Below, piece by piece: positions 136 to 50,338 of a DNA stretch of 64,000 nt. The notes below the pieces were generated by a model. It was not told the DNA's origin and ran no database searches. It worked only from the letters and a program-made list of their open reading frames with translations. The translations under genes and the position numbers were made by a program. Where the stretch lies: positions 1-64,000 of the forward strand of contig MCFE01000290.1 in the NCBI GenBank assembly GCA_002104905.1, written 5' to 3'. The stretch is from Basidiobolus meristosporus CBS 931.73 (taxonomy: Eukaryota > Fungi > Basidiobolomycota). Within the stretch, counting starts at the first letter, position 1. Every line of letters starts with the position of its first letter.

Positions 136-1521
136 CTAGAAACTATTGAGGAACGTAACGTAATCAGAATCTTGAATATCTAATAGGCTAAGTGCTGCCT
201 CACGAGATTCCGTACTGATGCGCTCATAAAGCTCCCGATCGTTCAACAACAGGTTTATCTCATCAATCCAAGGTTGAATATCGTTCTGGGGGATTTTAAG
301 CGGGCCGTGGCGTTTGATTTCCTCTTCATCGAGTTCTCGTTCGTTGGTTGCTAGCACCACTGGAATGGTTCCTCGAAGAATGCCACACTTGGCTTCTGGT
401 ACTCCGCCGGCATTACTGCACACTACTGGGATACCCCTAAGCATAGCTTCCACTACAACATTACCAAAAGTCTCCAGCCAAATTGATGGGACAACTAGGA
501 TCTTGGTACGCTGCCAGACTGGTTCCAGAGTGGGCATTGGAGCTAAGAGCTCAACATTTGGCAGGTCAGCTAGCTGAGATGCTTGGTACTCTGAGACGTC
601 CCAACTTCTTACGGCAAGGAATTTGGTATCTGGCATAGCCACGGCCAATGGATAAAATATGGAGAAGCCTTTCAGAGTCCCCGGGTTTATAGCCAATACA
701 CGAGCCTCTGGATTATCAAAATTTGCGTATTTTGGGGCGTTGGCAACGTCAAAGCGACTGGGGTGCAATGGAAAGTGCTTTACGGGGATACGAGTACTGC
801 CGTACCTATAGATATACTCTTGAACTGCCTTACTAACGGCCCATACCCCCGTTACCTTAGATTCCAATAGCTTCGTGTAGGTTGGATTGAAATCCTCCGG
901 CCACGTAGCAGATATTACTGGATTCACGTCTTGAGGGCCAAATGGCAAAATGTTGGTAACATGCGTGATGGCAATGGTTTTGATACCACTTTTCTCTTGT
1001 GGCATGAATTCCGAGGCGGCAAATTGAGAAATGAGGTCGCTATATAAAAAATGGGATGGCTGGAACTGGCGTACTTCCTTACGGATTAAGTTCGTGTAAA
1101 AATCCAGCATCTTATTTTCACCCTTTCCTAGTAGCCACTCGGATGGGAACATTTGTGGGAGAAACCCGTTACCCCCAAGGTCATCAATACAGTATGCGAC
1201 CATGGAGATTTGATTTACTGTCAGTCTGTAGAGGCGCACCTCCTTGGGTTGTTCTGTTGGTGGGTGGATGATTTCAACGGAGTTGATTGTTACTTGCTTG
1301 TCCTCAACTTCATGAGCAAAACAGCCAAGAAATAAAAGTGCCTCATGGCCCTGTAAGCTTAATGCCTCCAGTAATGACTTATCCGAGCGCGGTCCTCCAG
1401 CGGCTGCGAATAGTCCGGGGAATACCTGAACTACCATAATACGGATATGGTCATCTTCTGAAAGGTGCCCACTGCTTGCTGAGGACAGATGCTCACTACT
1501 GGGCTTGAGGGTTGTCAACAT
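136..1521 (-). CDS. Glycosyltransferase, GT-B fold, family GT4-like (intronless, 461 aa)
   Basis: ATG at 1521, uninterrupted ORF. Retaining GT-B signature ILVVPSIWLETFGNVVVEAMLRGIPVVCSNAGGVPEA (E-x7-E), N-terminal GG..KSLLEALSLQGHE loop, and NPGTLKGFSIF motif. Confidence 0.9.
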   Translation of the reverse strand: MLTTLKPSSEHLSSASSGHLSEDDHIRIMVVQVFPGLFAAAGGPRSDKSLLEALSLQGHEALLFLGCFAHEVEDKQVTINSVEIIHPPTEQPKEVRLYRLTVNQISMVAYCIDDLGGNGFLPQMFPSEWLLGKGENKMLDFYTNLIRKEVRQFQPSHFLYSDLISQFAASEFMPQEKSGIKTIAITHVTNILPFGPQDVNPVISATWPEDFNPTYTKLLESKVTGVWAVSKAVQEYIYRYGSTRIPVKHFPLHPSRFDVANAPKYANFDNPEARVLAINPGTLKGFSIFYPLAVAMPDTKFLAVRSWDVSEYQASQLADLPNVELLAPMPTLEPVWQRTKILVVPSIWLETFGNVVVEAMLRGIPVVCSNAGGVPEAKCGILRGTIPVVLATNERELDEEEIKRHGPLKIPQNDIQPWIDEINLLLNDRELYERISTESREAALSLLDIQDSDYVTFLNSF

Positions 1522-2127
1522 TGATGTATTGAGCTACTATAGGCGCTATCACTTTCCAGGGTGGGCTATTTATAGCGTCAATAGCACTAACACGACTTGA
1601 TTCAGCCCAGCTCTTATTTTATCTGTGTTGGGCGAAAGGAATAATGAATAGCAGCCATGTACTGAGTCAACAGTACCTTGTATCACATGCAGGCTGCTGG
1701 CTCTCTAATATGGCTATATTTGCTACGTTTCCATAGATATGGAGCTGCAAGAAGTCCTAAAATTCAGGTATTTTCAATACAATATCCCACTGGTGTAACT
1801 CCTAATTGTGTGAAGTGTAACCTAGAGTAAAATTCTTGTTGGGTTAGTAGACTTCATTTGTGGACCAAGTGCGTTCACTTCGACTGGCGATTATCGCTGC
1901 TATATTGAGTGTATGTGCACAAACACTGAATTAGAACTCCATTAACAACAAGCAATTAGTTACGTGGCTAGAATACTGCGGCTTATTCGATGAAGTCTAA
2001 TTTCAGCAGTTTATCTTAGCTTTGCTGAGTGGATTTTGTATGGACTGAGGTGCCAAATATGTTTAGAAAATAAATTTTCCCCCTTTAAGACCTAGTGTTT
2101 TATTATCGATTCTGGAGTGAGCCAGCC

Positions 2128-5100
2128 CTATTGAAGGTATCGTGCAATTTTGGAAATATGAGGGTCAAACATTAGCTCGTGGTGATGAGCGTCAATGGTG
2201 TGAATGGCTACTCGTGAGGAGTACTTCGACCATCCATAACACACTGACTCGTTGTCATTGACTCGCCTGTTTGAGGTGGCTTTAACCAAAACAACTTTGG
2301 CATTCAGCTTCTTCTCTGGTGGGCGGTATTTCCTCATCAAGCGTGTGTTGCACTCAATTTTGTTGCAGATCATGTGAGCTGCAGATTCGTCAATGTTCCA
2401 TTGGCCCAAGCGCGAAATCAAATCGAGATACTCTTGGCTGGAATAAATATCCATATTGACTTTTGTGGAAGCTATTGGAGCTAGAGCGTCAATAACAGTT
2501 ACTCTTGCTACCTCCGAGCCCTCCGCCTCCAGTTGACGTGCGGCCTCGAATGCTACTAGTCCCCCAAAAGAGTACCCGTGCAGGTGATAGGGTCCTTCTG
2601 CCTGAACCTGGCGAATCGCCACCAAATATCTGGCTGCCATCGCCTCGATAGATTCGAACGATACGGTTGTACCTAGAGTTGGGTCACTAATCGAATAAAG
2701 GGTATGGTTCATATGCTCACGGAGCAACTCGAAATAGCTTGATATCCCAATGACACAATGTATGATAAACATAGGTGCACCGGTCGCTTTACAAATGAGC
2801 GATAAACACTCATCTAGAGGGTGTGTGACTGAGCTGCCAGTGGTAGCGTTTAAGAAGCAATTTTCTGCGGATTCGGCAGGACTAATATAGGCTCCGTCGT
2901 ATGGAAGCAAGGTCGAATTTGAGGTATTCCTGGGAATTCCAGGATCCTCCTTTGATATGGATACCACTGCGTCGATCATTGCTGCCTCCCAGGCATTAAC
3001 CCAAGTTTGCACCTGTAGTTCAGAGTGTAATTCTTGGCTGTAGACAATGGTCGCTTCAAGCTCCTCGTCTATGTATCTCGCTGCGCAGTTGAAAATCTGC
3101 TGGCGTCTCCATTCTGGTGCGACACTTTGCAAGTCAAAACTGTATTTGGACTCCGATGTGATTGGCTGCAACAACTGGTGGCTTTCAAGTTTAAACGATT
3201 TTGGCATGTATCCAAAGGAGATTTGCAGTGGATCATGATCATGCTCGTCGTTGGTCTTATTACAGTATCTTTGAAGCCCATAAACTACCTCATTTCCTTG
3301 AATTTGCCGCCTCTGAGCCATGATTTGACGAATTACATCAAGAATGGTATCTTTTGCTGTGACTGAGACAGACACAGGATAGATATTGGTGAACCATCCT
3401 ACTGTTCTGGAGATATCGATGCTACTATCCCAAGCTTGGCGACCATGAAACTCCAAGGCCACTAAAAGCGAATGTCTTTCAAACACAGAGCAAAAAGAAT
3501 ATGCCAGAGAAGCAATAAGCAAATCCAATACTCCTACAGAGGCAGAATAGCCGCAAAAACTGTTGGCCAACTTGGAAAAGTACGCGTTTAACTTAAATGA
3601 GAGGGAGCGTGAGGATCCAACGGTATTTTTGGCAAGTAAAGAAGGATCGGAACACAACGGCTCAACAACTGGTTGCTTTGGCCACAAAGAGCTATCCAAA
3701 CTCCTTCCGTAGTCGGCAAGCATCCTACTCCACTTCATGAATGACATCGACTTGTAGTTGCACTCCTTTCCTTGAAGCAGCTGCTCAAGATCGTCCCATA
3801 TTATGCGCCAGGAGACAAGATCAATGATGTAGTGGTGAACAGTCATGAAGATCAGCTGCTCTCCCTCGGGGGTGTCGTATAAGGCAAACTGGAACAGAGG
3901 CCCGGTCACGATGTTAAGGCTGCGTTGAAGCTGATGAACATGAGAGCGGATCTCATCAACTGACTCTATATGGCGATGGTGCACTTGAATCATATCTTCA
4001 GCCACTGGAAAGATTTTTAATTCCCAATTACCATTAGCAATAGCGAAACGGGCTCGGAGTATATCGTGCTTTTCAATCAACTTGTATATGGATTTAGTTA
4101 AGGCTTCGCTACTAATAGGCTCCCGGACTTGAAGGAGCCAAGCTTGATTGAATTGATTGACATTCGTTTGTTTAATTCCCAAAAACATTCGCTGATTGGG
4201 TGTCAGTGGAACCGGCCCTTCGGTTATATTATCCTCGGAATGCTTCTCCGTTTTGTCAGATTCCAAATATTGAGCAAGCCTGCCAATCGTCTGATACTGC
4301 AGTATGTTTTGTACTGAAAGATGCATATTTGCTTTACGGCAACTAGAGGAAACTTGAATTGCAAGAATAGAATCTCCGCCAAGGCTCTGGAAGCTTTCAT
4401 TGATGCCAATCTTCTCCTCGGGGCAATCAAGAACCTCGGACCAAATCTTCTGAATAGAACTTTCAACTGCCGTACGAGGTGATATAGGAGTAATGTTGCG
4501 ACGGAAACCAAAATTGCCTACTCCCTCAATATTGATTTGCTCAAAGATTGTACTGAGAGATCTCCGATCGACCTTCCCGCTCGAGTTGGTTGGCAATCTG
4601 CTTAAAGGTACCCACTCGACAGGCACCATGTAGTGTGGTAGCTTATTCTGAACATGGGCTCGAATTTCTTCCATGTAAGTTGAAAAGTGGTAGTCCTGTA
4701 TTACTTTCACGTCCATGTCTTCGACTCGCTCATTCAAAGAAACAAACGCTACTAATACCTTGCGGTTAGTTGTTTTGTCAACCACTAACAGCAAAGTACA
4801 CGCGCGAGCGACCTTAGGATGTTCATGTAGGGCGTGGTCAATCTCATCCAGCTCAATTCGTAAGCCGTGCAGTTTGATCTGGTTGTCTTTCCTGCCATTC
4901 AATTCGATCGAACCATCCGAGTTGAAGCGTGCTAAGTCCCCTGTACGATACATGTATTTGCCATTCCCAAATGGATTCTTGACAAATACAGACTCCGTAA
5001 GAGTGGGCCTATTTAGATACCCACGAGCAAGTTGTGGGCCTGAGATGCATAGTTCACCTACAACTCCTGTTGGTACTTGTCGCAAGTCAGAGTCAACAAT

Positions 5101-8100
5101 GTGCACAATGTTAAAGCCTATTGGCTTTCCGACATTACTACAAGATGTATTTGTACTAAGCGATTGTTGAATTGTTACCGCAACTGCAGCTTCAGTCGGT
5201 CCGTAACCATTACTCAATTGAACATGCGGCGCCCAGGTATCACGGATTGTTGTAGTCATCATCTCACCACCAAGTTGCAGTTTTTTGAGGCTGGGGACTG
5301 ATTTCGGCCGAATTTTACCGGCGATCGTTGTAGTAAGGTTCGCGCAGGTAACATCCATAGATCGCATCACGCTGTCAAGTGAAGAAAGAAGCGCGGGTCT
5401 TGATTCCATACATACACGGGCTCCTGAGAGTAGCGAACAATATATATCAAGAACTGAGGCGTCAAAGGTGTAGCTCGCAAATTGTAACACTGCATCTTCT
5501 TCAGTCAGATTCCATATTTCTTGCTGTGCACGGACAAAGCTGAGCACAGCAGAATGCTCCATCAAAACGCCTTTCGGGGCTCCGGTAGATCCCGATGTAT
5601 ATATGATATAGCATAAGGCTTCCGGTGTTAGATTGCTGACAACGGGATTATCGGATGAGTACTTTTCTATAGCCTCCTGGTCTTTGCTGAGCAATACTAG
5701 AGTCTGACCTTCGAACTTCTCTTTATGATCCTCGGCAGTAACAATTATTGTAGCTTTAGTGTCCTTCACTATAAATCTGACGCGTTCAATAGGATGATCA
5801 GGATCAATTGGCACATAGGCCCCGCCCGCCTTTAGGATAGCCAACATTGCCACTATCATATCTATAGACTTATCAAAACATATGGGTACCATGGATTCAG
5901 CAGTGATCCCAAGACTGAGGAGATAGTTTGCTAGGCGATTGGCTCGTTTGTTGAGTTCTGAATACGTGATGAACATGGTAACTCCAAATTGTACCGCTAT
6001 ATTGCTGGGAGTACGCAATACTTGGCGCTCGAACTCGTTGTGAATACAAGATTTTGATAGCGCGTCGCCCAATGAAGCATTAGTCGAAGCATAGACGCAG
6101 TCATGCAATACGCAACTTATATCTCCAAGTAGAGCATCTGATTTGGCATGAATCAAACTATCGAAAAGCTTTGAGTAATCCCTAGCAATAATTTTAGCAT
6201 TGGCTGTATCAGCGATCTTCCCACTAATATCCAGACGATACGTTAGTCTTGAGCTATCTGGACCAATTAGTAGAGTTAGTGGGTACTACAAGTAAGAATA
6301 AATGATCAGTATATAAGCTGCATAGAAGATGAACTATTACGAAGTTACAAACCTCAGTAGTCTCCGCATCTTGACAAGGAACTAATTTTAGTCGATTTGC
6401 ACTAATTTCCCCCAGTTCAGAATTAGTAGAGAGCATACTAGAAGGTAGATAGTTGATGGCAGTATCGATAAGTGGTGAGGTTTCCGTCCAATGCTCAATA
6501 TTACGAAGACTGCTTTGCTGGTACGAAATAGTTGAAGCATAATCTTGCTGTATTTCTTGGAGCCAGCCATGTATTGGCGCTTGTTCGTCGTATCGAATGC
6601 GACATGGTAGCATATTTATGCAAGGCCCCACTATTCTGTCGATGCCTTTGATCTCACTATTTCTCCCATCTACCACATACCCGAAAGTTACATCCTTAGC
6701 TTGAGTGTACATTTTCAGTAGCATTGCCCAAGATGCCTGAATTAGTGTAAATAGAGTTACACCCGACCTTCTGGCAAATTGCAGTATCTCAGATAAAGGT
6801 GTCTCAATAGAGCTATATATCTGTGACTTTTCGCAGTCTGTACGATGGACACTCAACTTTGGAAATGGTAGATTTTCGACACCACTCAACTTGTTTTGCC
6901 AGAATTGCGTTTCTTTTGTGGAACTTTCGTGAGTTCGGAGTAGCATGCGGGAGATGAAGCTCTTAAATGGGTATGTCACCGGTCGTAGAGTTGAGTGATA
7001 TACAGCCTCAAAGTCAGCAAGAATCAGCTTCCACGACGTTGCATCCAGGATAGCATGATGCCAGCTAATAACTAGTTCACTGATACCGGTGTTTGTTTCC
7101 AACAGTGCAAATCGCATTGCCGGCTCCCCAAGAGGAAAGCTCGCAATCTTATCTTCTGCAAGATACGCCATCCGCTCACTCTGGACGCTATCTTCGTCAC
7201 ATACGATATGGACCCATTGATGATCAGAGTTCTTGACAACCACTTGGAGGAATATAGGGCCGTTCTTTTGGATGATAGGGTTCTGCACAAAAACGGTACG
7301 TAAAATAGGATGTGTATCAACAACAGTTTTCCACGCCTTTTTAAGTTGGGTAATGTTGGATGAGCCAATAAGCTGATATGTCTGCTGCACATGATAATAC
7401 TCGGGGTTCTTTAGCATTCCTGCTATAAGGCCTTCTTGTAGATGTGTACATGGCAAGATATCATCAACCGCCGTGGTATCGATACCGCTCTCCGGAAGTT
7501 TTTGATGATAAAGAAGATGAAAATCTGCCTCCGAAAGAGGAAGTAACGGAAAATCACTTCGAGTGTGCTCACTCCGACTAACATGCACACAAAGCTCGAT
7601 TATAGTATGCAGAGCCTCTTCCCACTCCTTAAGCCATAAAGAAACAGTCTCTTGTGAGTGTAACGCCGTGCTAAAAGTGATCGTTGCCTCTAAAAGGCCG
7701 CGATTCACACCAACCGAAATATCAAATACATGATTCCTCTTCCAATCATCAGAGATTTGGCAAGTATCAAAATCGTATTCATCATCCGGTTGTTGGAAGA
7801 AGGCATCTGCCTTTTCGAGTTGCTGAAATCGACCAACATAATTGAATCCAATTTGAATTTTGTCATTTCTCAGCCTGTTGTCGGGGCCGCTCAAGTGACT
7901 TAGCAAACCGTAGGAAAAACCGTTGTTTGGTATCATCTTTCTTATGTCCTTGACATTTTTTAAGGTAGCGAGCGCATTTTCCGTTTGTGCTGGTTTTATA
8001 GTTATAGGGTATATCGACGTGAACCAACCAATCGTTCGAGATGTATCAATATCTTCGCACCAAGCTTCTCTACCATGGCTCTCCATTCCAATTGTCAAAG

Positions 8101-11100
8101 ATTCTGAATTGAATACATTGCAATATGCAATAGCTAGTGAAGAAATCATCAAATCGAGGGCTTCAGTTTGAAATGCATGATTGCATACTCCAAATAGGTT
8201 TTCAGTTTGCTCGTTACTTATGTTGAATGAAATCATTTTCGTGGTTGACATTAGATTCTTTTCAAGTGCGTAATCATCAGCTACTGGTTGCACCACAGGA
8301 TATTTCGTCCATAAACTTATATCCAATGTCTTAGCATAATCATTTAGCATCCTGCTCCACTTCATGAATGACATCGACTTGTAGTTGCACTCCTTTCCTT
8401 GAAGCAGCTGCTCAAGATCGTCCCATATTATGCGCCAGGAGACAAGATCAATGATGTAGTGGTGAACAGTCATGAAGATCAGCTGCTCTCCCTCGGGGGT
8501 GTCGTATAAGGCAAACTGGAACAGAGGCCCGGTCACGATGTTAAGGCTGCGTTGAAGCTGATGAACATGAGAGCGGATCTCGTCAACTGACTCTATACGG
8601 CGATGGTGCACCTTGAACTGTACCTCAGCTGGTGGGAGCACACTCAACACTGGGTTCTCTTCAATATTAGAGAAGCGGGCACGCAGCATATCATGATTAT
8701 CAACGATTACTCTTAAGGCGTTCAAAAGTGCGTTGTGAGTAGTTGGTTTTTGCAGCCGAAGTAGCCAAGATTGGTTAAAATGATGCACATTTGTTTGTTT
8801 TTGCTCTAGGAAGTATGCTAGAATAGGTGTCAAAGGCACGAAACCATTGAGGTCTTCTGCTATCATATCAGTTTTTTCGGTAATCTGTGTGGATGCCAGC
8901 GCTAATTCTCGGATAGTGGAATTTTGCATGATTTGCTGAACACTTAAGAAAATGCCTTTTTGTCGACATAGCGAAGAGACACGAATTGCTGATATCGAGT
9001 CACCCCCTAGGTGATAGAACAAATCATTCACACCAATGCTTGTGACATCGATGTTAAGTGTTTCTGCCCATATCGCTTGCAGCGCTTTCTCAAGTGTAGT
9101 CGAGCACTCTGACTTCGTCTGATTCGAAGATGAAAAGATCAACATACTTTCTCTGCTCAAGTCAGCAACGGTAGCGGATAGGGCTTTGCGATCAATCTTT
9201 CCACTATTATTTCTTGGCATTGTGTTAAGTGGCACCCAGAGGCTAGGGATCATATACGGAGGAAGCCTCATTATAACAAGCTCTCTAACTTCCTTGATAA
9301 AATTGGCAAGCATCCCGGAGTCGGCGTTAGTAAGCATTCTGACATCGCCAGCGTCTTTATCAAATCCATCGAACGTCAGGAATGCCACTAACGTGTTATG
9401 ATCCATATTAGAACCACTATCCATCAGAACAACACAAGCTCGTTTGACTTCTGAGTGCTCATGTATAGCATGTTCTATCTCATCCAACTCTATTCTTAAG
9501 CCACGTAACTTTATCTGGTTGTCTCTTCTTCCCATCAACTCAATAGAACCATCGAAATTAAAACGGGCCAGATCACCAGTACGATATAAACGTTCTCCAT
9601 CTAGATATGGATTCGGTACGAACGCCGCTGCGGTTTGCTCCGGTCGATTTAGATAGCTACGAGCAAGTTGAGCTCCTGAAATACATAGTTCACCAACAGC
9701 TCCAAGCGGGGTCAAGCGCAATTTGGAATCCATGATATAGATCCTATTGTTTGATAGAGGTTTGCCGATATTGCTACATGAGGTTTTAGCGCTCAATGAC
9801 TTGTTTACAAGCACCGCAACCGCAGCTTCGGTTGGCCCATATGCATTGCTTAATTGAACATGGGGGGCCCAAGTATCGCGTATTGTAGCGGTCATCATTT
9901 CCCCACCGACACATAACTTTCGTAAATTTCGAAGATTATTCGGGTTCAGGAGGCTCAACACTGTTGGGGTAAACATTGCGGAGGTGATATTCATCCCAGA
10001 AATTGCTTCATCGATATTCTCATGGAATATTTTCTTGCTTGCAATACAGGCTCGGGCTCCAAATAGTAAGGGAACATATACCTCAATTACAAACAGATCG
10101 AACGTGTAATTAGCCATTTGTAGTACTGAATCATTAACAGACAGTTTCCATATATCCTGCATCCCATTAATGAAGTTTGCTACAGAGCCATGCTCTAAAA
10201 GTACGCCTTTGGGAAGTCCGGTGGATCCCGATGTATAAATGGCATAGCACAGATTTGCTGCAGTTATGCCTATCACGGCTGGATTCGGAGATGAATACTC
10301 CTCAACTGGCTGATCTTCGATGATCACAACTGTCGTCACAACTCCGTCAAACTTGTGCCTATATTGGCTGTTGGCGACCACGATATTTGATCGAGTTTCC
10401 TCGATGATGAACCGATTACGATCATCCGGGTTACCAGGATCCAATGGAACATACGCACCTCCCGATTTCAGAATGGCCAACAAGGTGACGATCATGTTCA
10501 CCGATCGATCAAGACACACAGGCACGAGGGTTTCTATGTTGACACCGATATCTATCAGATGGTGTGCAAGTCGGTTGGCGCGACAGTTCAGCTCATGGTA
10601 CGTCACGAATTCCTCATTCTCGAACTGGACTGCGATGTTGTCTGGCGTACGTAGGACTTGTTCCTCAAATAGTGTATGGATGCAGCACTCGGGCGAGTTT
10701 CTGGTGAACGAGCCGCTCCACTGTCGCAGCAGCTCATACTCCTTACTAGAGATGATGCCGAAGTCATCAACCCGAGTCTCAGCGTTGTCTGGTATGGACA
10801 GTAGTGCTGTCTTCATATGCTCGAAAATCCACTTGGCCTCGTCATTGTGGATGAGATTCTCGTCGTACAGGATTGACAGCTCGTGCCCATCTGCCCCGGT
10901 GGCGAGTTCCACCACAACGGCATAGTTGCTTGGCATTGTTGCCTTGACAACCTCCATCCCAATCGAGTGCAGGCCATGTCCCAACTGGTCAATGTCGAGA
11001 TTCTGCACTGCCAACAAAGAGTCGAATAACGAGCTACCAAGTTCACCGACACACAGCTTCTGAATATCCTGCAACCCAATATTCTGGAATCGATGTTGCT

Positions 11101-14100: not shown

Positions 14101-17100
14101 CGTCATTGTGGATGAGATTCTCGTCGTACAGGATTGACAGCTCGTGCCCATCTGCCCCGGTGGCGAGTTCCACCACAACGGCATAGTTGCTTGGCATTGT
14201 TGCCTTGACAACCTCCATCCCAATCGAGTGCAGGCCAGGTCCCAACTGGTCAATGTCGAGATTCTGCACTGCCAACAAAGAGTCGAATAACGAGCTACCA
14301 AGTTCACCGACACACAGCTTCTGAATATCCTGCAACCCGATATTCTGGAATCGATGTTGTTCCACCTGTCTCCTGTGCATACCAGTCATCACCTCGAGCA
14401 TAGTTGGATTATCGCTGAGGTTGACACGAACTGGCAGTGTGGTGATACAAGGCCCACATATTTGATCGATACCCGCCACAGGAACACTACGTCCGGAGTT
14501 CGCAACCCCAAATACAACATCCGAGTTTCCAGTATGGCACTTCAGCACCAAGGCCCATGCTAGATTCACGATCGTAGCCAAGGTCAAGCTGTGGGCGCCC
14601 GTCAATATGGAGAAGTCAGCACAGATTCTCTCTCGGATCAAGGTACGTGCTTGTGGTTTGTACGAGTGTACAGTAGGCTTGGCAATGTGTGTGGCGGTGA
14701 CTTGATCCAGAAGCTGTGCCCAATATTCGATAGCTTCCTGTCTATCCTGATCGATGACGTATTCGATGAACCGAGAATAGGCTGGTCTTTTCGCCAGCTG
14801 CGCGCCTCGGTAAGCAGTAACAAGATCCTCGATGAGTAGTCCCATTGACCAACCATCGTACAGCGTGTGATGGATGGTCCAAATGAAGAATGTTCTGCAT
14901 TGATCATCCCTCAGAACAGTGAAGCGAGCTAGCAGTTTCCCCATCTCAATCCCGCGTTCTTGATCTTGTTTGAGTACTTTCGATAGCTCCGTGGTAATGT
15001 CAGTGTTGCTTGGGCACTTAATCACTGTCCAGTCCATGTGCCCACCAACTAGGACTACCTGCAGCCCACCCAGGTGCGGATGACCAGAGTTTGTGAAGAC
15101 GATTGTTGTGCGAAGGATTGGATTTGCCTCGATCACCGACGCCCATGCTGACTTCAGAAGGGCAAGATCAACCTCGGGTTTGCAAACGAACACCTGCTGG
15201 GTCAGATAATCGGAGCTCGATCGCATCCCCAGCGCAAACAGGCCTTCCTGAAGGGGTGAGCAAGGGTAGATATCTTCTACATGTTCGGGAGTAATCCCAT
15301 TCTGGGCAACATCCACCTCCAGCAACTGCTCCAAATCGTCTGGGTTGAGCTGAAGCAGCGAGTACTTGTCAGCCTCTGCTATCTCCGCCGCTTGCACTTG
15401 AAGTGGCTGAGCCAGCGAAGCTAACCTGGCAATGGTAGGATGTTCGAAGACTTGCTGCACGGTGATGCAGCAGCCTGACTGGCGAGCCAACGATACCAGT
15501 TTGATGGCCGAGATCGAGTCTCCACCAAGGCTGAAGAAGGAATCGTTGACTCCAATCTCATTCTCAGGGACGTTCAGCACCGGTGACCATATTTTCAGCC
15601 ATAGGGACTCCCTGTCGGTGGGCGGAACATTATCTCGGCCTCTCTGCGATCGACTGAATGCATAGAGTTGCTCTTTACTCGCTCCGCGCACATGCGCCTC
15701 TAGCTGCTTGCGATCTATCTTCCCGCTCACATTGGTTGGCATCTGACTCATTGGTAAGAAGATATGAGGCATCATATAGGGTGGCAATTTCGATGTGATC
15801 AGATCTCGTATTTCGCTAATCCATTGAGCCCCCAATGCCAGATCTTCGAGACGGAGTATGTGAGTCTCTGGCCCAGATTCAGACTTCGTGTGGAAGTATA
15901 GGAATGCCACTAGTACTTTACGGCTGTCCAGCTCATCAATGATCAACGGAAGTACACAAGCACGGGCTACCTCAGGATGTATATGAAGCGTGTGTTCTAT
16001 TTCATCCAACTCGATACGGAGACCGTTTAACTTGATCTGGTTGTCTTTTCGTCCCAACAGCTCCACTGTACCGTCCATATTGAATCGAGCCAGATCGCCA
16101 GTGCGGTACATGCGCTCCCCTTTCCTGAACGGGTTTGGCACAAAAGCCTTCTCCGTAAGATCCGGTCGATTGAAGTAGCCCCGAGCAAGTTGACAACCAG
16201 CAACGCAGAGCTCACCAACTGCGCCCATCGGGGTCATTCTTAGTTTAGGATCCAGAATATAAATTTCGTTTCCTGCAGTTGGACGGCCAACATTACTACA
16301 GGATATTTTGGTATCCACCTCTGGATTTACCATAAAAGCAATGGCGGTCTCAGTCGGTCCATATGCGTTTGTCACGCGAACTCTTGAAGCCCATCGATCG
16401 CTAATATCGGTTGTCATCATTTCACCGCCTATGATTAGTTTGTTGAGATGTGGCAAGCTCTTGGGTTGTAGTAAACTGGCTAGCGTAGGTGTAAGTGAAC
16501 CAAGCGTAACATTCATTGACTGTAGCACATGAGTGAGATCGGTGAGAAGCAATTCTTTCCTGGCCATACAAAGACACCCACCAGTAGATAGTGTTGAGAA
16601 TATGTCTAGTATAGATGCATCAAATGTATAGCTTAGGAATTGTAGTACTCTGTCATCTGATGTTAGCCGCAGTATGTGCACCAATTCGTGAAGATAATTT
16701 GCGACAGAGGAATGCTCTAGCATCACACCTTTCGGAGCTCCAGTAGATCCTGAGGTGTAGATTATATAACATAAGTTCTTTGCACCATGATTGCTGAGCA
16801 GGGGATTATCGGTAGAGTATCCACAAAGCAGCTGTCTTTGGCAATCCATATTTATGATCGATATCCGTCTAAACCTGCCTTTTAGCATATCTGTGGTGAT
16901 TACAACCTGAGCGTTGGTTTGCTTCACAATAAATTCGTTTCGTTCTAACGGATTCTCTGGATCAATCGGGACGTAGGCTGCACCGGACTTGAGTACACCA
17001 AGTATCGCTACTATCATATCTACTGACTTTCCCAGGCATAAAGGTACTACAGTTTCTATGTCGACACCGATATCTATCAGATGGTGTGCAAGTCGGTTGG

Positions 17101-20100
17101 CGCGACAGTTCAGCTCATGGTACGTCACGAATTCCTCATTCTCGAACTGGACTGCGATGTTGTCTGGCGTACGTAGGACTTGTTCCTCAAATAGTGTATG
17201 GATGCAGCACTCGGGCGAGTTTCTGGTGAACGAGCCGCTCCACTGTCGCAGCAGCTCATACTCCTTACTAGAGATGATGCCGAAGTCATCAACCCGAGTC
17301 TCAGCGTTGTCTGGTATGGACAGTAGTGCTGTCTTCATATGCTCGAAAATCCACTTGGCCTCGTCATTGTGGATGAGATTCTCGTCGTACAGGATTGACA
17401 GCTCGTGCCCATCTGCCCCGGTGGCGAGTTCCACCACAACGGCATAGTTGCTTGGCATTGTTGCCTTGACAACCTCCATCCCAATCGAGTGCAGGCCATG
17501 TCCCAACTGGTCAATGTCGAGATTCTGCACTGCCAACAAAGAGTCGAATAACGAGCTACCAAGTTCACCGACACACAGCTTCTGAATATCCTGCAACCCA
17601 ATATTCTGGAATCGATGTTGCTCCACCTGTCTCCTGTGCATACCAGTCATCACCTCGAGCATAGTTGGATTATCGCTGAGGTTGACACGAACTGGCAGTG
17701 TGGTGATACAAGGCCCACATATTTGATCGATACCCGCCACAGGAACACTACGTCCAGAATTGACAACCCCAAATACAACATCCGAGTTTCCAGTATGGCA
17801 CTTCAGCACCAAGGCCCATGCTAGATTCACGATCGTAGCCAAGGTCAAGCTGTGGGCGCCCGTCAATATGGAGAAGTCAGCACAGATTCTCTCTCGGATC
17901 AAGGTACGTGCTTGTGGTTTGTACGAGTGTACAGTAGGCTTGGCAATGTGTGTGGCGGTGACTTGATCCAGAAGCTGTGCCCAATATTCGATAGCTTCCT
18001 GTCTATCCTGATCGATGACGTATTCGATGAACCGAGAATAGGCTGGTCTTTTCGCCAGCTGCGCGCCTCGGTAAGCAGTAACAAGATCCTCGATGAGTAG
18101 TCCCATTGACCAACCATCGTACAGCGTGTGATGGATGGTCCAAATGAAGAATGTTCTGCATTGATCATCCCTCAGAACAGTGAAGCGAGCTAGCAGTTTC
18201 CCCATCTCAATCCCGCGTTCTTGATCTTGTTTGAGTACTTTCGATAGCTCCGTGGTAATGTCAGTGTTGCTTGGGCACTTAATCACTGTCCAGTCCATGT
18301 GCCCACCAACTAGGACTACCTGCAGCCCACCCAGGTGCGGATGACCAGAGTTTGTGAAGACGATTGTTGTGCGAAGGATTGGATTTGCCTCGATCACCGA
18401 CGCCCATGCTGACTTCAGAAGGGCAAGATCAACCTCGGGTTTGCAAACGAACACCTGCTGGGTCAGATAATCGGAGCTCGATCGCATCCCCAGCGCAAAC
18501 AGGCCTTCCTGAAGGGGTGAGCAAGGGTAGATATCTTCTACATGTTCGGGAGTAATCCCATTCTGGGCAACATCCACCTCCAGCAACCGCTCCAAATCGT
18601 CTGGGTTGAGCTGAAGCAGCGAGTACTTGTCAGCCTCTGCTATCTCCGCCGCTTGCACTTGAAGTGGCTGAGCCAGCGAAGCTAACCTGGCAATGGTAGG
18701 ATGTTCGAAGACTTGCTGCACGGTGATGCAGCAGCCTGACTGGCGAGCCAACGATACCAGTTTGATGGCCAAGATCGAGTCTCCACCAAGGCTGAAGAAG
18801 GAATCATTGACTCCAATTTCGTTCTCCGTTATGTTTAGAACTTCCAACCATAAGTCTTGGAAATACTTTTCGTTCTTTGTTATAGGCTTAGAATAATTAC
18901 GTCCTTTGATTTGAGTAAATGACTGAATGGTGCTCCAATTAGTGGCTGCGAAAATATTTGCTAATTTCTTTCTATCCAGTTTACCAGCAGAACTCCTTGG
19001 CATCCTACTTATTGGTAACCATACAGCTGGGACCATGTAAGATGGAACTTTTGATCGAACTAGATCCCGCGCCTCCGCAATCCAGTTGACGAATCGTTCA
19101 TTGTTTGTTGTGATTAATTTACACTCTGTCTCGGTTTCTTCGAACTCGGAACTGAACGCAAGGAATGCGGCCAGAATTTTCCGTTTTGGCGTCGTATCAA
19201 TAGTCATAGCCAAGACGCAGGCTCCGAGAACCTTTGGGTGCTCATGAAGTGCATTCTCGAGTTCATCCAGCTCGATACGCAGGCCGTTTAGTTTGATTTG
19301 ATTATCTATTCTTCCTATCAACTCAACCGAGCCATCCAAATTGTAACGCGCCAAATCACCAGTGCGGTACATCCGCTCCCGGTTATCGTAAGGATTGAGA
19401 CTGAATGCCTTTTCAGTAATTTCAGGTCTATTAAGGTATCCACGCGCCAATTGATTTCCAGCCACACATAATTCACCAGCTACACCCAGTGGAACAGTTT
19501 GTAATTGTGAATCAAGAATATAAATCTTATTACCTCTAATCGGTCTTCCCACATTGTTGCAGGCCGTACCCACTTGGACTTTTGGATTCATCATAAATGC
19601 CACTGCGGCTTCTGTTGGACCGTACAAATTAGTCAATTGTACTCTAGACGCCCAAGTATCACGGACGCTTGTGGTTAACATTTCTCCACCCACTAAGAGC
19701 TTCTTCATACTTGGCACCATCCAAGGCCGCACAGTTGCAGCGACAGTTGGAACAAGTAGAGAGGCTGATACCTTCATAAGCTCAATTGTACTTTCCAATG
19801 CGTTCAACAGCTTTTCCCTACTTGCTACTGCTACACGTGCCCCCACCATAAATGGTGTGAAGATTTCTACTACTGATGCATCGAAAGTATAACTGGCAAA
19901 CTGAAGGACGCTGTCTTGATCATTCAACTGCCAATTTTCTTGATTTGCAAACAGGAAGTTTGTAACGGCTGAATGCTCCAATATCACTCCCTTTGGTACA
20001 CCTGTAGAACCCGAAGTGTACAATATATAACAGGGATCACTTGGCTCCAAATCGATTGCCACCGGATTTTCACTGGAATATTGGCAGATAGTCTCCTCTA

Positions 20101-23100
20101 CTTGGTCAATCGTGACTGCTGTATATCCATTGAATAAAGTATGATGAGCGCTTGTTGTCACAACAATATTGGCTTCCGCTTCTTGAAGGATAATGCGAAT
20201 TCTGCTTGTTGGGCTCTCCAGGTCCAATGGCAAATAGGCACCCCCGGCCTTGAGCACAGCCAGCATTGCAACTATCATCTCGACGGACTTATGGAAGTAT
20301 ATAGGTACAACTGATCTGGACCCTATACCCAGATCTCTCAAGTAATGCGCTAGATTGTTGGCTTGCTTGTTTAGAGACTCGTAAGTGACGCAGTGGCCTT
20401 CTTCAGTTTGAACTGCGACATTTTTTGGTGTGGCTTGTACTTGTCTTTCAAACAGTTTGTGAATGCATTCGTATTGCCCCACAGTACTACTACCGCCAAA
20501 GGAGATTATCATTTGTCGCTCGTATTCGGAAATTCTTGGGATCGCCAAGACCTTTGTATCTTCACGAACGTTAAGGAATGCTTGCAGTATGGCTTCCAAT
20601 CTGTTGATAAATAGACTTGCCAATGCGGGTGGTAATGTGCCACGACTATAATCTAGGCGGTATTTGAACACTCCCTCATGGATCCAGATATTGAGTCCCA
20701 GAGTGTATTCTGTTGGCTCAATAGTGTTTTCTAACTCGAAATATAGGTCACAATCCGCTCTAGAGGCCGTTTCTGACTGCTCTACTGGCTGGAAGTTCAA
20801 AATTGAGTCGAACTCAGGTGCACAGCCACTTGCTTTGCACCATCCCTTTATCGTTTGTAATCCAATCTGTTGGTAGGGGATCGAATCAATCATATGCTGA
20901 TGAATTCTTCTCAACCACATGAATACGGGCTCCTCTTCCTCATACGAGATTCTTAGTGGTAAAGTGTTAAAGCATGGGCCAACAACTTCATCAATGCCCT
21001 TCATGGATATGTTTCTACCATTGACGAGAACCCCGTAAATGCAGTCGCCTGCGCCATAATAAGGTCGAAGCACCATCCCCCAAGCTGCTTGAAACAGGGT
21101 AAATGTGGTTACTCCTGCTTTCTTGGCAAAGGTTTTCAGGCTCTCAATTTGTAAGCTGCATGTCGCCGTTAACTGGAATCGCTCGTCCTTTGGAAAATCC
21201 GGACCACCTAACTTTGGGAGCAAGCATGGCTCAGCATTGGACAAGTAGCGACACCAAAACTCTCTTCCTGCCATGTCTGTGTACTCTTTCTGCTCTTCTA
21301 TGTAATATTTGATGAATTCCTTGAATGGCAGTGCTGCAGGCTTAGGAATTCTGTTGTAAATAGCATGAACGTACTTCATGATTATTCTGTCTGACCAGCC
21401 ATCGTTCGTTGCATGATGACGACTTATGATCATCCGCGAGCAGCCGTCGATTTCACGGATAACGCATAGCCGTATGTTTGGCTTCCCAAGGGGAAACCCT
21501 TTGGTTATGTCTGTAGCGAGGTACTCCATTAAAGCTTCATCAGCCATTCCATTTCGTGCGGATATATAATCGGTAGTAATCTTTATCTGTCTCAGGACTA
21601 CTTGGACATACAACCCCGACGAGTGTTTAGTGAATGGACTGCTGAGGAAAATGGTTCTTAATATGGGCAGGTCTTGGATCGCAGTCATCCAAGCAGAGTT
21701 CAGCTCTTCGAAACTCCAATGACCTCTGAGCTGGTATACATCTTGTACATGGTATAACTCGGGTGATCTCATATTGCCGATGATCAATCCTTCTTGTATA
21801 GGGGAACATGGATATATGTCTTCAACGTTTTGAGCCAAGTTTTCATCATATTGAGGTAATATTTCGAACTGAAGCTTGTCTGCCTCCTCTTTTGTTAGAC
21901 CCAATAGTGGAAAGTCTGAATTTGTGAACCGGGATGTGGTTTGATTGGCGCACTTTACTATGACCTCAATAAGGGTATCTCTCCAAGTCTGTAGCCACTG
22001 CTCCATTTCAGGTTTTTCATGTAAGGCGTTGCTATACGAGATGGAAGCGCTCAGCTTCTGATGCTTCATAGTCACCTCAACCTCAATGGCGTTCATTCTT
22101 TTCCATGTTGGACCGATCATACCCAAATCAAACTTATACTGATCACTCACGTCTTGTAGCAACGCGTTCGCTTTTTCGAGGTGTTGAAACCGTCCCAAGT
22201 AATTGAACCCGACTTGAAAGAAGTCGTTACGGAAGTTTGAAGCGGTTTTCTCGTTTAGATAACGAAGTAGTCCGTAGTTAAAACCATGATAAGGAATATT
22301 TCTACGGATGTCTTTGGTACGCATCAGCACATCGATCGCAGATTCCTCTGGGTAGACCTGGATACTAACTGGATATATGGTAGTAAACCAACCAACGGTT
22401 CTGGAGATATCAATGGAATCCTTCCATGGCTCCCGGCCATGTCCTTCGGCTGCAATGGTCAACGATCGGGCATCAAAGGTTGTACAGTAAGCTGTCGCAA
22501 GTGAAGAAAGCATAAAGTCTACAGCCTCTGTTCTGTACGCATCGTTACTCACTCCAAATAGAAGGCTGGTGTGCTCCTCTTCTAACGAAAAGGATAGTGT
22601 GTGTACTGATTCCATAGTGTTCAAATCTAGCTTCGATATGTCGACTTTCAGAGGCTCCATAAGCTCTTGTTTAGGCCAATCGGTAAGGTCCAACGAGGCC
22701 GCACGGTTTCTCAGTAGCTTGCTCCAAGTCAAAAAGGAGATTGATTTGTAAGATAATGTACCTCCGTTCAACAAGTTCTCAAGATCTTCCCAGATAATAC
22801 GCCACGAGACAAGATCTATTAGATAGTGATGAATGGTCATGAAGAGCAGTTGCTCACCCTCCGGAAGATCGAAGAGTGCAAATGAAGAAACGGGCCCTGA
22901 TTCCAGATTGAGACTACTCTGAATTCCATGAATTCTCCTCTTCAAATCCTCTATGACCTGAACTTCGGAACGTTCAACCTCTATGTTTTTTTCGCTTTTT
23001 TCTATCAGCTGTTGTTTCCAGCAACCGTCTACACGAGAAAACCGTACACGTAGCATACTGTGGTGCTCTACGAGTCTGTTGAGCGCGTCTACTAGCTGCC

Positions 23101-25886
23101 ACTTCTGCAGAGGATACCTCACTTTCACTAACCAAGACAAGTGAAAATGATTGATGTTGGACTGCTCAACTCCTAGAAACTGTTGCTGAATCGGTGTTAA
23201 AGGAATCAAGCTCTTAGTCCCCATTTGGTCATCCCAATCGGTGGGTTCATATTCTATTGATGTGTCGGTAACCAACTGTGCGTAGTCAACAGCTTGTTGA
23301 ATGGTTGGATATTGTAAAATACTCTGTACGGACACCTTAACTCCCATTTGACGACACATCGATGACACCTGAATGGCGGAAATGGAATCACCGCCCAGAT
23401 GATAAAAGGAGTCGCTAGTACCAATGCAAGATTGTTCTATGTTGAGCACTTCTGCCCAGGCTTTTTGCAAGATTTTCTCTATGGGAGAATTCGGCTGCGT
23501 CTTCAGTTCATTATACTCATTGGTACGACTATGCATGTTCTTCGAATAACTCTTAAAGAGCTTTTCTAGCAGCCTGAAGTCCGTCTTTCCGCTTGTGTTG
23601 ATAGGGATTCGAGTAAGAGGGATCCAGAGAGTAGGCACCATGTATGGGGGTAGCTTTCTTCTCGTTAGCTCTTGTATTTCCTCCACCATTGCACTGATAT
23701 CGCCATGTCTGTCTCCGCTACTTAAAATTTCCGTCTCATCCTCGACAGCTACGCTTTTGAATGTAACAAAAGCCACAAGCGCTCTATTCCTCTCTGTCTG
23801 GTTGGAGGGCTGTTCTATATTCAGGAGCCTAGCTGAAGCTCTTGCTACATTCGAATGTTGATGTAAGACGTGCTCTATCTCATCTAACTCAATTCGTAGC
23901 CCATTTAGTTTTACCTGGTTATCCTTTCGCCCAAGAATAACTATTGATCCATCGAGGTTATATCTCCCCAAGTCTCCTGATTTGTAGAGGCGCTCTCCCA
24001 AACAGAACGGGGAATCGATAAACGCCGATTCAGTCAGCTCTGGTCTATTCAAGTAGCCACGAGCAAGTTGAGGGCCTCCGAAATAAAGCTCCCCAACAGC
24101 ACCCAACGGAACCAGTCCAAGTGTGTCATTCAGGATGTATACTTTGTTTCGGCCGATTGGCCAGCCAATGTTATTGCAGGCTGTGGCGGTGCTTAATGAT
24201 TTTCTAACCATGGTGTATACTGTGGTCTCGGTAGGCCCATACCCATTATGCAGATCCACACTTTTGCACCAGGTATCGCGGATCGGTTTGGTCATCATCT
24301 CACCTCCTTGCTGGAGTTTTCTAAGAGTGGGCACTTCACTAGGCTTTAATAAGCCAGCCACTGTGGTTGTTAGCTGGGCTGCGGTAACCTTCATCATATG
24401 TGCCATTTCAGACAGATTAGTGAGCAAGTTGTTTTTGGAAGCCAGGCAAATTCGCGAGCCAATTGTGAGATTTACAAATAGGTCGAGTATAGAGGCGTCG
24501 AAGGTGAAATTGGAGAATTGGAGAAAGCGATCACTTTCGTCCAGACTGAGTATGTTTTTATGGCTTGCTGTGTAATTGACGACGGCCCGATGCTCTACCA
24601 TGACACCTTTAGGTGTTCCTGTGGACCCAGATGTAAATATCACATAGCAAAGACTAGAAGAGTCAAGCTGAGGAACCACAGGGTTTTTTTCTAACTTCCG
24701 GTGGCTTTCAATGTCGCCACTGTCTAACAAAGTCAGCAGGATATTGGTACAGGCGGTAAAAACACTTTTCAAGTCGCTCGTAGTCAAAACAATAGTAGAC
24801 TTCGTTTCTTCAAGGATAAAAGATACCCGCTCTTTGGGATATTCCGGATCCAAAGGAACGTAAGCAGCTCCTGACTTTAACACGGCTAAGATAGCCACCA
24901 CCATATCAATAGATTTGTCGATGCAGATAGGCACAATTTTCTCAGGCCCCACTCCAAGATCAATGAGGTAGTAGGCAAGTCTATTAGAACGACGATTCAA
25001 CTCAGCGTACGTAACAAATTCTTTATCCTCAAATTGTAGCGCGATGTTGAAAGGAGTCTTATCCGCCTGCTCTTCCACAAGTTGATGAATACAACGATCA
25101 TCCAATTCCGGGATATAATCAGGCTTTGCGTGCTGCCATGTATTTAGAAGTAGGATCTTTTCCTTGTCGGAAGTCCAATCCAGAGATCTTAGAGGTGTGT
25201 TGAGATTGCTCACTATTTTTTGCATTATGTAGACGAATTGGTCGGCATAAAGCCGGCCTTGATCTTGCTGAAAATGAGTATTGGATAGGCTTAGCCGTAT
25301 ATTGAGCTCCCCATTGACCAACCAACTGACTGCGTACGCGGCAAACTTGATGACCGAGTTTAAAAATCAGCCACTTGTGTTCGAGAAGATACAATATTTA
25401 ACTTCTAAAGTATAGTACCTGCTGGTTGATATCCATTTCGACTATTTCATCGTCACTGGCAAAAAGGACTGATGTGTTGAACGTATGCTCTACATTGCCA
25501 GATTCAAGGTCGACTGACTCCACGGGAGATGTATTGGCTAACTGTCTTACCCATTCCACTACCGAGAGAGATTTGGTTGTTTCATCGATGCTAGAGTGAA
25601 ATACCTGTATGTTGTTCGCAAGCGAAGAGGAGGACTGATTACGGATGCTTGTGCCAAAGGAGATTTGGGGGTCTCCAGTGTACAAGTTGAGCAAAATAGC
25701 CCAGGCTGCATGAACAAGACTTATCTCAACATTCAGGATATCCTCTGGCATGCCGTTTTTGTAGACTCTATCCACCGATATAACATTGGACTTGGTAACA
25801 TGGAACCAGCGCTTCTCGGCAGTGTCTAAGACTTCAGAGCTGGATGATGGCAAGAGAAGACAAGCGTTCGCTGATGGGATGTTCAT
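2128..25886 (-). CDS. Hexamodular nonribosomal peptide synthetase, about 7,872 aa: C*(truncated)-A1-T1-E1-C2-A2-T2-C3-A3-T3-C4-A4-T4-C5-A5-T5-E5-C6-A6-T6-E6-TE; exons 25419..25886, 6353..25345, 2128..6285
   Basis: Six A domains (YxxYTSGSTGxPKG, YGPTE, YRTGDL, NQxKLxGLRIEL) and six T domains (LGGDSI). Five C domains (HHxxxDGWS/HHAILDATS), three E domains (HHYxIDLVSWRI plus ExHGRE/Q and SRTxGWFT) and a TE (GYSFGG, IDA, HHELM). The three ORF-track ORFs join in frame through two phase-0 introns; exon lengths 468+18993+4158 are all divisible by 3. Confidence 0.93.
3719..3984 (-). repeat. 266-bp block of E6 nearly identical to 8346..8611 of E5
   Basis: Both encode VHHR(R/H)IESVDEIRSHVHQLQRSLNIVTGPLFQFALYDTPEGEQLIFMTVHHYIIDLVSWRIIWDDLEQLLQGKECNYKSMSFMKWSRML with almost identical DNA; the flanks are diverged. 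Confidence 0.92.
6286..6352 (-). other. Intron 2 of the NRPS (67 nt, phase 0)
   Basis: GAG|GTTTGT donor and CTTGTAG|TAC acceptor. Splicing gives ETTE|YPLTLLIGPDSSRLTYRLD, collinear with EPTE-YTLGLNIWIHEGVFKYRLD of C2. Confidence 0.85.
8346..8611 (-). repeat. 266-bp block of E5 nearly identical to 3719..3984 of E6
   Basis: Direct sequence match; see partner block. Confidence 0.92.
10180..13012 (-). repeat. Intragenic NRPS repeat copy C (A4 C-terminus, T4, C5, A5 N-terminus)
   Basis: Near-identical to 13441..16273 at offset 3261 bp; antisense ORFs recur with the same offset (10320/13581). Confidence 0.95.
13441..16273 (-). repeat. Intragenic NRPS repeat copy B (A3 C-terminus, T3, C4, A4 N-terminus)
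   Basis: Near-identical to copy C (-3261) and, in part, to copy A (+3261); only scattered substitutions (e.g. GVANS/GVVNS, GPGL/GHGL, DKYS/DKCS). Confidence 0.95.
17052..18805 (-). repeat. Intragenic NRPS repeat copy A (T2 core, C3, start of A3)
   Basis: Near-identical to 13791..15544 (offset 3261); identity starts at the DSFFSLGGDS codons of T2. Confidence 0.93.
25346..25418 (-). other. Intron 1 of the NRPS (73 nt, phase 0, AAG acceptor)
   Basis: CAG|GTACTA donor, CTGAT branch-like site, CATCAAG|TTT acceptor (the only AG after the in-frame TGA). Joins INQQ|FAAYAVSWLVNGELNIRL. Confidence 0.75.
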
Positions 25887-32300: not shown

Positions 32301-32571
32301 GGCAAAAAGGTTAAATAATTTTCAGTGTCCACTTTTAGTATCATCATGGCTTAATACTGTATCTCCTTATGCGTTTGAGTTGTGCGTCTGGACCCATGCT
32401 CATCTTGATTGGCTCGGGTGCCACCCACCCATCCACTAATAAAATTAGATTCAAGAATTAAGCTGCGCAAAGGGTAACCCATTGTTTTACTTATTCCATT
32501 TCACTTGTTTAAACTTTCCTTCCTTCCACCTTGCACTTCCTTCCTAACACTAGCCTCCCTGACAAATAATA

Positions 32572-48188: not shown

Positions 48189-50338
<2,150 letters not shown>

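Follow-up and report, generated by a model that had tools for sequence, protein, structure and literature searches.

A six-module nonribosomal peptide synthetase and an adjacent GT4 glycosyltransferase in Basidiobolus: a candidate two-gene unit for a glycosylated hexapeptide

Do a multimodular nonribosomal peptide synthetase (NRPS) and a family 4 glycosyltransferase (GT4), encoded side by side in the genome of a gut fungus, work together on one product? Among the glycosylated nonribosomal peptides of bacteria are important antibiotics; for fungi, the literature searched contained no multimodular NRPS paired with a glycosyltransferase (GT) of its own. The locus considered here lies at the end of contig MCFE01000290.1 of Basidiobolus meristosporus CBS 931.73 (assembly GCA_002104905.1), the window being the stretch of 64,000 nucleotides that was analysed. 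A first-pass annotation of this DNA had described a two-gene cluster, in which a six-module NRPS with epimerisation (E) domains in modules 1, 5 and 6 and a C-terminal thioesterase (TE) is followed by a co-oriented, intronless GT4 gene, and had proposed it as a new pathway to a glycosylated hexapeptide. We consider, with a probability of about 0.6, that the NRPS and the GT4 form a two-gene biosynthetic unit for a glycosylated hexapeptide, of which we infer the stereochemistry, release mode, glycosylation, acceptor and sugar from the sequence. If confirmed, a glycosylated product would represent a new compound class for fungi.

A first argument comes from the conservation of the pair. In the window, the NRPS stop codon is at 2128 and the GT4 start codon at 1521, so that the GT follows the NRPS on the same strand after a 606-bp spacer, as had been annotated. 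Synteny of the two genes in relatives had been set beforehand as a test, and the outcome is favourable: B. ranarum carries the pair twice. In the orthologous pair, the TE end of the NRPS is 69% identical, the spacer measures 607 bp and the GT is 80% identical. In the paralogous pair, a four-module synthetase, built of adenylation (A), thiolation (T), condensation (C), E and TE domains in the order A-T-E-C-A-T-C-A-T-C-A-T-E-TE, is 49% identical at its end and is followed 472 bp further on by a GT that is 64% identical; its contig ends 1.3 kb past this GT. A further B. ranarum paralog ending in T-E-TE is adjoined by Band_7 and BAG genes, with no GT. Overall, a functional link between NRPS and GT seems rather probable.

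The GT4 gene itself (P0001; 136..1521, minus strand) has no intron and encodes 461 amino acids. Its product scores 50.8 bits with Pfam Glycos_transf_1, for a cut-off of 26.4, and the AF2 model (pLDDT 86.7) displays a GT-B fold, with MshA, BshA, glycogen synthase and sucrose-phosphate synthase as nearest structures. The EX7E motif (E350...E358) and every family-invariant residue are retained. By its domain, its fold and this motif, the protein is a retaining GT-B enzyme of the CAZy GT4 type. Searches against NCBIfam and PDB sequences returned just generic C-terminal BshA/MshA matches, far below family cut-offs. Comparison with the B. ranarum ortholog gives a pN of 0.12 and a pS of 0.80; saturation at synonymous sites prevented the calculation of dN/dS. 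The gene is under purifying selection.

A second argument is provided by the bacterial relatives of this enzyme, to which the Basidiobolus GT is homologous over its full length, with 28-39% identity and tblastn E values of 1e-41 to 1e-51. Eighty bacterial loci were retrieved with GT-only peptide patterns and examined within 10 kb. Thiotemplate domains accompany the GT in 66 of the 80 loci (both A and C domains in 45, a T domain in 63) and in 0 of 4 fungal control loci. In the usual layout, an A-T protein, the GT4 and a C-A-T protein are encoded consecutively and in the same orientation. The genes of Herpetosiphon aurantiacus have stop and start codons that overlap by 4 bp, and the one downstream of the GT4 encodes a C-A-T-TE-MFS protein; the same gene order is kept in Paenibacillus, with intergenic gaps of 8-35 bp. 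Since the bacterial relatives sit in peptide assembly lines, the Basidiobolus pair probably makes an undescribed, sugar-decorated peptide.

The pocket codes of the bacterial A domains, read by alignment to the A domains of the window, give an indication of the acceptor. In 23 loci, the A domain directly upstream of the GT displays DASTVAAVC or DASTIAAVC, which we take to be the tyrosine code of the Stachelhaus table. The upstream code is DVWHISL(V/I)D, of the serine family, in 5 loci, and DFWNIGMVH, of the threonine family, in 1 locus (PMC12283262). Thus, a Tyr, Ser or Thr code precedes the GT in 29 of 30 loci, distributed among Bacillota, Chloroflexota, Acidobacteriota and one cyanobacterium, and the codes of the A domains downstream of the GT are diverse. 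In view of these upstream codes, the members of the bacterial NRPS-embedded GT4 family look like O-glycosyltransferases that act on hydroxy amino acids in an assembly line. A literature search on NRPS-associated GT4 domains and on tyrosine O-glycosylation in NRPSs yielded nothing relevant and no paper on this bacterial family, which appears uncharacterised. An enzyme family placed in this way, directly behind modules that carry a Tyr, Ser or Thr code, would be useful for glycopeptide engineering.

Several bacterial arrangements deserve mention in their own right. The compact operon of H. aurantiacus DSM 785 (CP000875.1, about 3.947-3.956 Mb; L039:8097-16761) and of Paenibacillus (L016:8101-16892) consists of an A-T protein with a Tyr code, the GT4, and a C-A-T-TE protein fused to MFS, in which the A domain carries the Asp/Asn-like code DLTKIAHVS. 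The arrangement is kept across Bacillota and Chloroflexota. It is a candidate pathway to a glycosylated dipeptide, of which no description was found. A metagenome-assembled genome of Chloroflexota (L017:6438-15304) encodes a formyltransferase-A-T protein followed by a GT4-C-A-T fusion. In two Acidobacteriota proteins (P0030 and P0037), the GT4 is fused to a TE and adjoins stand-alone carrier proteins. Many of the stand-alone bacterial GTs finish with an 'LSxEK..LLA' tail.

What would the fungal synthetase deliver to such an enzyme? The NRPS gene is on the minus strand, where three exons joined across two short introns give a single frame of 7,876 amino acids. Exon 1 (25419..25886) begins a truncated C-like domain, C* (amino acids 1-225, together with the start of exon 2), that is devoid of HHxxxDG. 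Intron 1 (25346..25418; 73 nt) is followed by exon 2 (6341..25345), which encodes the end of C*, modules 1-5 and most of C6. After intron 2 (6286..6340; 55 nt, GTAATA...CTGAT...TAG), exon 3 (2128..6285) encodes the end of C6, A6, T6, E6 and the TE, with the stop codon at 2128. The public annotation K493DRAFT_377413 (P0062, 7,872 amino acids) differs from this three-exon model only in the donor of intron 2, placed at 6352 (GTTTGT) instead of 6340 (GTAATA), the latter site retaining four extra residues (VCNF). The first-pass annotation had mentioned neither the introns nor the truncated C-like domain at the N-terminus, nor the proximity of the contig end to the GT.

Pfam and self-comparison give the layout C*-A1-T1-E1-C2-A2-T2-C3-A3-T3-C4-A4-T4-C5-A5-T5-E5-C6-A6-T6-E6-TE. 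On the minus strand from 25886 to 2128, Pfam recognises 6 AMP-binding, 8 Condensation-superfamily, 6 PP-binding and 1 Thioesterase domains, and the repetition of C-A-T modules with core motifs (6 A, 6 T, 5 C) makes the protein a multimodular type I NRPS. GGDSI is present in all six T domains. HHxxxDG is found in C2-C5 and HHxxxDA in C6; C* corresponds to just the C-terminal half of a C domain, without the His motif. E1 (21962..23206; amino acids 870-1284) and E5 (7610..8845; amino acids 5657-6068) were delimited by motifs and self-comparison; E6 (2965..4218; amino acids 7181-7598) gives a weak TIGR01720 match. All three carry HHY(L/I)IDLVSW, (E/S/F)HGR(E/Q) and RT(V/I)GWFT..YP, the last motif being degenerate in E6, and in a tree the E domains of the window fall in an E clade apart from C domains. 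The E and C domains are distinct units, with the E domain ahead of the C domain, as opposed to dual E/C domains. The TE (2167..2775; amino acids 7662-7864) matches Pfam Thioesterase PF00975 with 99 bits; its GYSFG serine and a C-terminal His-rich motif are seen, the aspartate of the triad being placed by position only. The annotated domain architecture is thus borne out by open reading frames (ORFs), Pfam, self-comparison and motifs. Besides, E5 and E6 share a 300-nt block with 92% identity (3665-3964 and 8292-8591 in the window) and the proteins are near-identical around HH, which suggests gene conversion between the two domains.

From this organization, the following scheme may be envisaged. 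The NRPS would activate six amino acids, and residues 1, 5 and 6 would be epimerised. The TE, located directly after E6, would release a D-L-L-L-D-D hexapeptide, either linear or cyclic. This configuration, already proposed in the first-pass annotation, is deduced from the positions of the E domains, which appear intact. The N-terminal half C domain, lacking catalytic histidines, is probably inert. The GT4 would be a cytosolic retaining GT-B enzyme acting with the synthetase. Most likely, its target would be a peptide residue with a hydroxyl group, O-glycosylated in the released product or when still bound to the carrier.

The A domains were examined with this acceptor in mind. The A4-A5 motif spacing is 84 residues in the A domains of the window; that of GrsA is 86. 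The pocket code is DALQQGGVY for A1 (23714..25075, minus strand) and DALNQGGVA for A6 (4669..6033, minus strand), with pocket position 278 placed by motif anchoring that leans on the GrsA sequence. Substrate prediction from the six codes of the window was dropped, the codes not being of the bacterial type and allowing no assignment. The two Basidiobolus NRPSs that are linked to a GT agree at the readable pocket positions of their end modules, QQGGVY in the first module and NQGGVA in the last; six positions are readable in the B. ranarum paralog, the first three being mis-anchored. In the TE-bearing paralog P0063, the last-module code is DAMVMGGVA. The common end-module codes hint that an end residue could be the sugar acceptor.

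Modules 3-5 have a peculiar organization, with a period of 3,261 nt (10200..18800, minus strand). Blocks of 1.7-2.8 kb, corresponding to T, C and the flanks of the A domains, are 98-100% identical at the DNA level, 10200-13000 matching 13461-16261 and 13800-15500 matching 17061-18761. Between these blocks, the A-core cassettes, of about 0.8-1.1 kb, are just 45-60% identical. This pattern points to gene conversion or to a very recent duplication with swapped specificity cassettes.

The non-coding regions of the pair also share features. The spacer with the GT promoter (1522..2127, minus strand) contains a TATA-like box at about 1566-1575 and the 9-mer GCCAAATAT at 2052-2060. The NRPS promoter region (25887..26686, minus strand) contains a TATAAAAG box at about 25940-25947 and GCCAAATAT, on the minus strand, at about 26549-26557. 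This 9-mer is common to the NRPS promoter and to the three GT promoters (that of the window and those of both B. ranarum loci), its background being 6 sites in 64 kb. Sharing of any 8-mer by all four promoters was obtained in 4% of shuffles. The extended form (A/T)(A/G)GCCAAATAT occurs once in each of the four promoters, the sites being 2052-2060 and about 26549-26557 in the window, about 529 in locus L002 and about 9788 in locus L001. A second 8-mer, TGTGTGAA, is likewise common to the four promoters. The motif that contains GCCAAATAT resembles what we take to be half of a CArG-type box. On the basis of the common 9-mer, shared regulation of the NRPS and the GT is possible.

Several considerations weigh against a two-gene unit for a glycosylated hexapeptide. 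Only 135 bp separate the GT gene from the contig end, so that the cluster first annotated has no definable limit on the GT side and additional cluster genes may be missing. The order of the genes differs as well, the fungal GT coming after the TE and the bacterial GT after the first A-T. As the A codes of the fungal enzyme are unreadable, a residue offering a hydroxyl acceptor can only be presumed, and the number of modules in the assembly is less certain owing to the near-identity of the repeats. The promoter motif was identified post hoc, with modest significance. Apart from a patent compound that is not defined, the published metabolites of Basidiobolus are only basidiosins and meristosporins, which are cyclic pentapeptides without glycosylation (PMC10964425). 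Finally, four further GTs of the fungal clade (B. ranarum P0010 and those of Glomus, Rhizophlyctis and Thermothielavioides) lack any thiotemplate domain within 10 kb, which indicates that the GT family can work without an NRPS in fungi.

This last point leads to the alternative that survives best, although we regard it as rather unlikely. The GT4 would be a mere neighbour of the NRPS, with a role in the cell wall or in the synthesis of a small-molecule glycoside, and the adjacency would have been inherited via segmental duplication. Besides the four fungal relatives, which lie amid housekeeping genes, the TATA-like promoter proper to the GT would agree with such independence. However, adjacency, orientation and spacer length have been kept despite saturated synonymous sites, and the pairing holds even where the NRPSs are only 49% and the GTs only 64% identical. 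The GTs linked to an NRPS make up a subclade of their own on a long branch, the bacterial members of the family are strongly embedded in NRPS loci, and a promoter motif is common to both genes. These observations argue for a joint function of the NRPS and the GT4 rather than for simple vicinity.

A second alternative, which we hold to be improbable, is that the whole NRPS and GT unit results from a recent bacterial transfer. Gene model 377413 was indeed listed as a bacterial-transfer NRPS candidate, with a best hit in gamma-proteobacteria and no product assigned (Tabima et al., 2020; PMC7466969, Table 3). The first-pass annotation needs amending on this point, the NRPS gene being catalogued already. 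A recent transfer would also account for the few introns, for a GT family that is mostly bacterial and NRPS-linked, and for the TE, the nearest relatives of which outside Basidiobolus are bacterial. However, domain by domain, a different picture emerges. Searches with E1-C2-A2 and with T6-E6-TE retrieve Basidiobolus paralogs first, then hundreds of NPS4-type synthetases of Pezizomycotina, in none of which PF00975 is present, and few bacterial proteins. The best per-domain matches outside Basidiobolus are in these Pezizomycotina proteins, with identities of 38-40% for A, about 34% for E and 30-33% for C domains. FastTree trees were calculated with 20 bacterial proteins (long ones, gamma-proteobacteria not being represented), 19 from Pezizomycotina and 7 from Basidiobolus, including the NRPS of the window. 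The 15 Basidiobolus and 49 Pezizomycotina E domains form one clade (support 100, stem 0.93), and all 127 fungal C domains are in a single, bacteria-free clade (support 100), where C2 and C6, each of which follows an E domain, belong to a subgroup different from that of C3-C5. In the A-domain tree, Basidiobolus, Pezizomycotina and bacteria are split three ways, a pattern that is uninformative in the absence of a root. When the TE alone is searched exhaustively, close relatives are found in Basidiobolus only; beyond these come bacterial T-TE-TE termini, with a mere 31-36% identity. Nor are the pocket codes and the A4-A5 spacing of 84 residues those expected from a bacterial origin.

The NRPS thus appears to be a mosaic by affinity, with C and E domains of the fungal type and a TE of the bacterial type, and a recent wholesale transfer from bacteria fits poorly with such a composition. 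These data rather suggest a TE-terminated relative of the NPS4 lineage of Pezizomycotina. Given the small bacterial sample without gamma-proteobacteria, the published transfer label is challenged, not refuted. The question raised by the domain trees about this label bears on the evolution of fungal multimodular synthetases and of their release domains. A kinship between the TE of the NRPS and that of the bacterial GT4-TE fusions was also considered and rejected, the best TE matches being the T-TE-TE ends of bacterial NRPSs that have no GT.

The phylogeny of the GT leads in the same direction. In each of the two trees calculated, the thirteen fungal GTs fall in a single clade (SH-aLRT 99 with 55 rows and 100 with 132 rows), apart from 119 bacterial or metagenomic sequences; thus, the GT was not recently brought in together with a bacterial NRPS. 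Within this clade, the three NRPS-linked Basidiobolus GTs have a long stem (1.1), compatible with a change of function. Either the fungal GT family would have kept an old link with an NRPS only in Basidiobolus, or a fungal paralog would have been recruited to the synthetase.

A last alternative, in which the GT would make a small glycoside used by the TE as off-loading nucleophile to give a peptidyl-sugar ester, or would glycosylate the product only for self-protection or export, is very improbable: the nearest solved GT4s do make small-molecule glycosides (MshA, BshA, sucrose-phosphate synthase), bacterial relatives of the GT are fused to TE domains and the TE of the window is distantly similar to that of Pks13, which moves an acyl chain onto trehalose, but the position of the bacterial GT after Tyr, Ser or Thr modules argues for a side-chain hydroxyl as acceptor, and the resemblance to the Pks13 TE is one that the family shows in general, the top PDB matches being TEs of fatty acid synthases and NRPSs.

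If the two-gene unit is retained, how does it compare with known systems? The nearest relatives outside Basidiobolus, for the whole protein and per domain, are the NPS4 or 'WARP' synthetases of Pezizomycotina (Fusarium NRPS4 for fusahexin, Apiospora NRPS4, HcpA and Pes1), the products of which are D/L peptides of 4-7 residues (bioRxiv 10.64898/2026.07.13.738209). As in the NRPS of the window, their E domains are discrete, and the C domains behind them belong to a distinct subtype. However, they carry an E domain in every other module, a C-type terminal release domain and an ABC transporter as partner, whereas the window NRPS has E domains in modules 1, 5 and 6 only, TE release and a GT4 partner.

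The malpicyclin and malpibaldin synthetases of Mortierella alpina, MpcA and MpbA, share with the window NRPS a C-terminal TE of type I and, at the N-terminus, a truncated C domain that lacks HH, and they incorporate D-amino acids. They use bacterial-type dual E/C domains, group with bacterial NRPSs and have no GT reported. The window NRPS differs in its discrete E domains and fungal-type C domains; in the limited sample of the trees, these C and E domains do not nest among bacterial homologues. The view of TE release as mainly bacterial, expressed in the first-pass annotation, needs to be corrected for early-diverging fungi, in which TE-terminated NRPSs are on record with MpcA and MpbA and with the Basidiobolus gene model 387529, which also carries a TE. 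A third comparison is with ACV synthetase, an NRPS found in fungi that ends in T-E-TE and in which the TE takes the peptide after C-terminal epimerisation. This enzyme has three modules, makes a linear LLD tripeptide and has no GT. The likeness to the window NRPS considered here is that of domain order.

As to glycosylation, fungal clusters in which a hybrid of polyketide synthase (PKS) and NRPS has its own GT to decorate the product are those of epicoccamide (EpiB) and burnettramic acid (BuaB) (PMC9685919). These pathways, likened here by description only, make tetramates with single-module PKS-NRPSs that are not multimodular, and the polyketide part is mannosylated. With the bacterial NRPS-embedded GT4s, the Basidiobolus GT has in common same-strand adjacency to an NRPS and the invariant residues. 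The bacterial enzymes are either inserted between the first A-T and the next C or fused to C-A-T or to a TE, whereas the Basidiobolus GT4 has a gene of its own, located beyond the TE end of the NRPS, and groups in a distinct clade of fungal GTs. No characterised fungal pathway matching this locus was found in the literature searched, in agreement with the first-pass annotation.

Beyond the two-gene unit, it is tempting to imagine that the GT4 belongs to an undescribed assembly-line class that O-glycosylates Tyr, Ser or Thr in concert with NRPS carrier domains, from Bacillota, Chloroflexota and Acidobacteriota to fungi, and that the Basidiobolus pair makes the first fungal O-glycosylated multimodular nonribosomal peptide. 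We hold this wider proposal to be tentative and clearly less likely than the two-gene unit itself. If it were true, this O-glycosylated peptide, made by a synthetase that couples a TE of the bacterial type with C and E domains of the fungal type, might be the first of the multimodular kind known from a fungus, a consequence that is equally speculative.

The surroundings of the pair were inspected on the NRPS side. Nothing obviously biosynthetic was found among the window ORFs upstream of the NRPS, and no ABC transporter was seen among the ORFs at 25.9-64 kb, in an ORF-based look by which intron-rich genes may be missed. A tract of about 7 kb directly upstream (25900-32700) is AT-rich (GC 0.36-0.40) and contains no ORF with a recognisable product. 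Beyond it are a V-ATPase proteolipid-like ORF (33039-33305) and an NTF2-domain gene (about 35.5-36.8 kb), and the housekeeping-type genes upstream also include Suc_Fer-like, GFAT, RING and RasGEF. An ORF at 48189-50183, on the minus strand, has a GATase and two SIS domains and corresponds to glutamine-fructose-6-phosphate amidotransferase, the first step towards UDP-GlcNAc. Located 22 kb upstream of the NRPS amid housekeeping genes, it is probably unrelated to the GT.

Finally, large NRPS genes run into contig ends in both Basidiobolus assemblies (L001, L008, L012 and L013). Examples are the 4,932-residue partial protein P0065 of B. meristosporus and the fragments P0146 and P0261 of B. ranarum. 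The likely cause is the breaking of the assembly by near-identical modules. A second NRPS-GT pair may be hidden in B. meristosporus.

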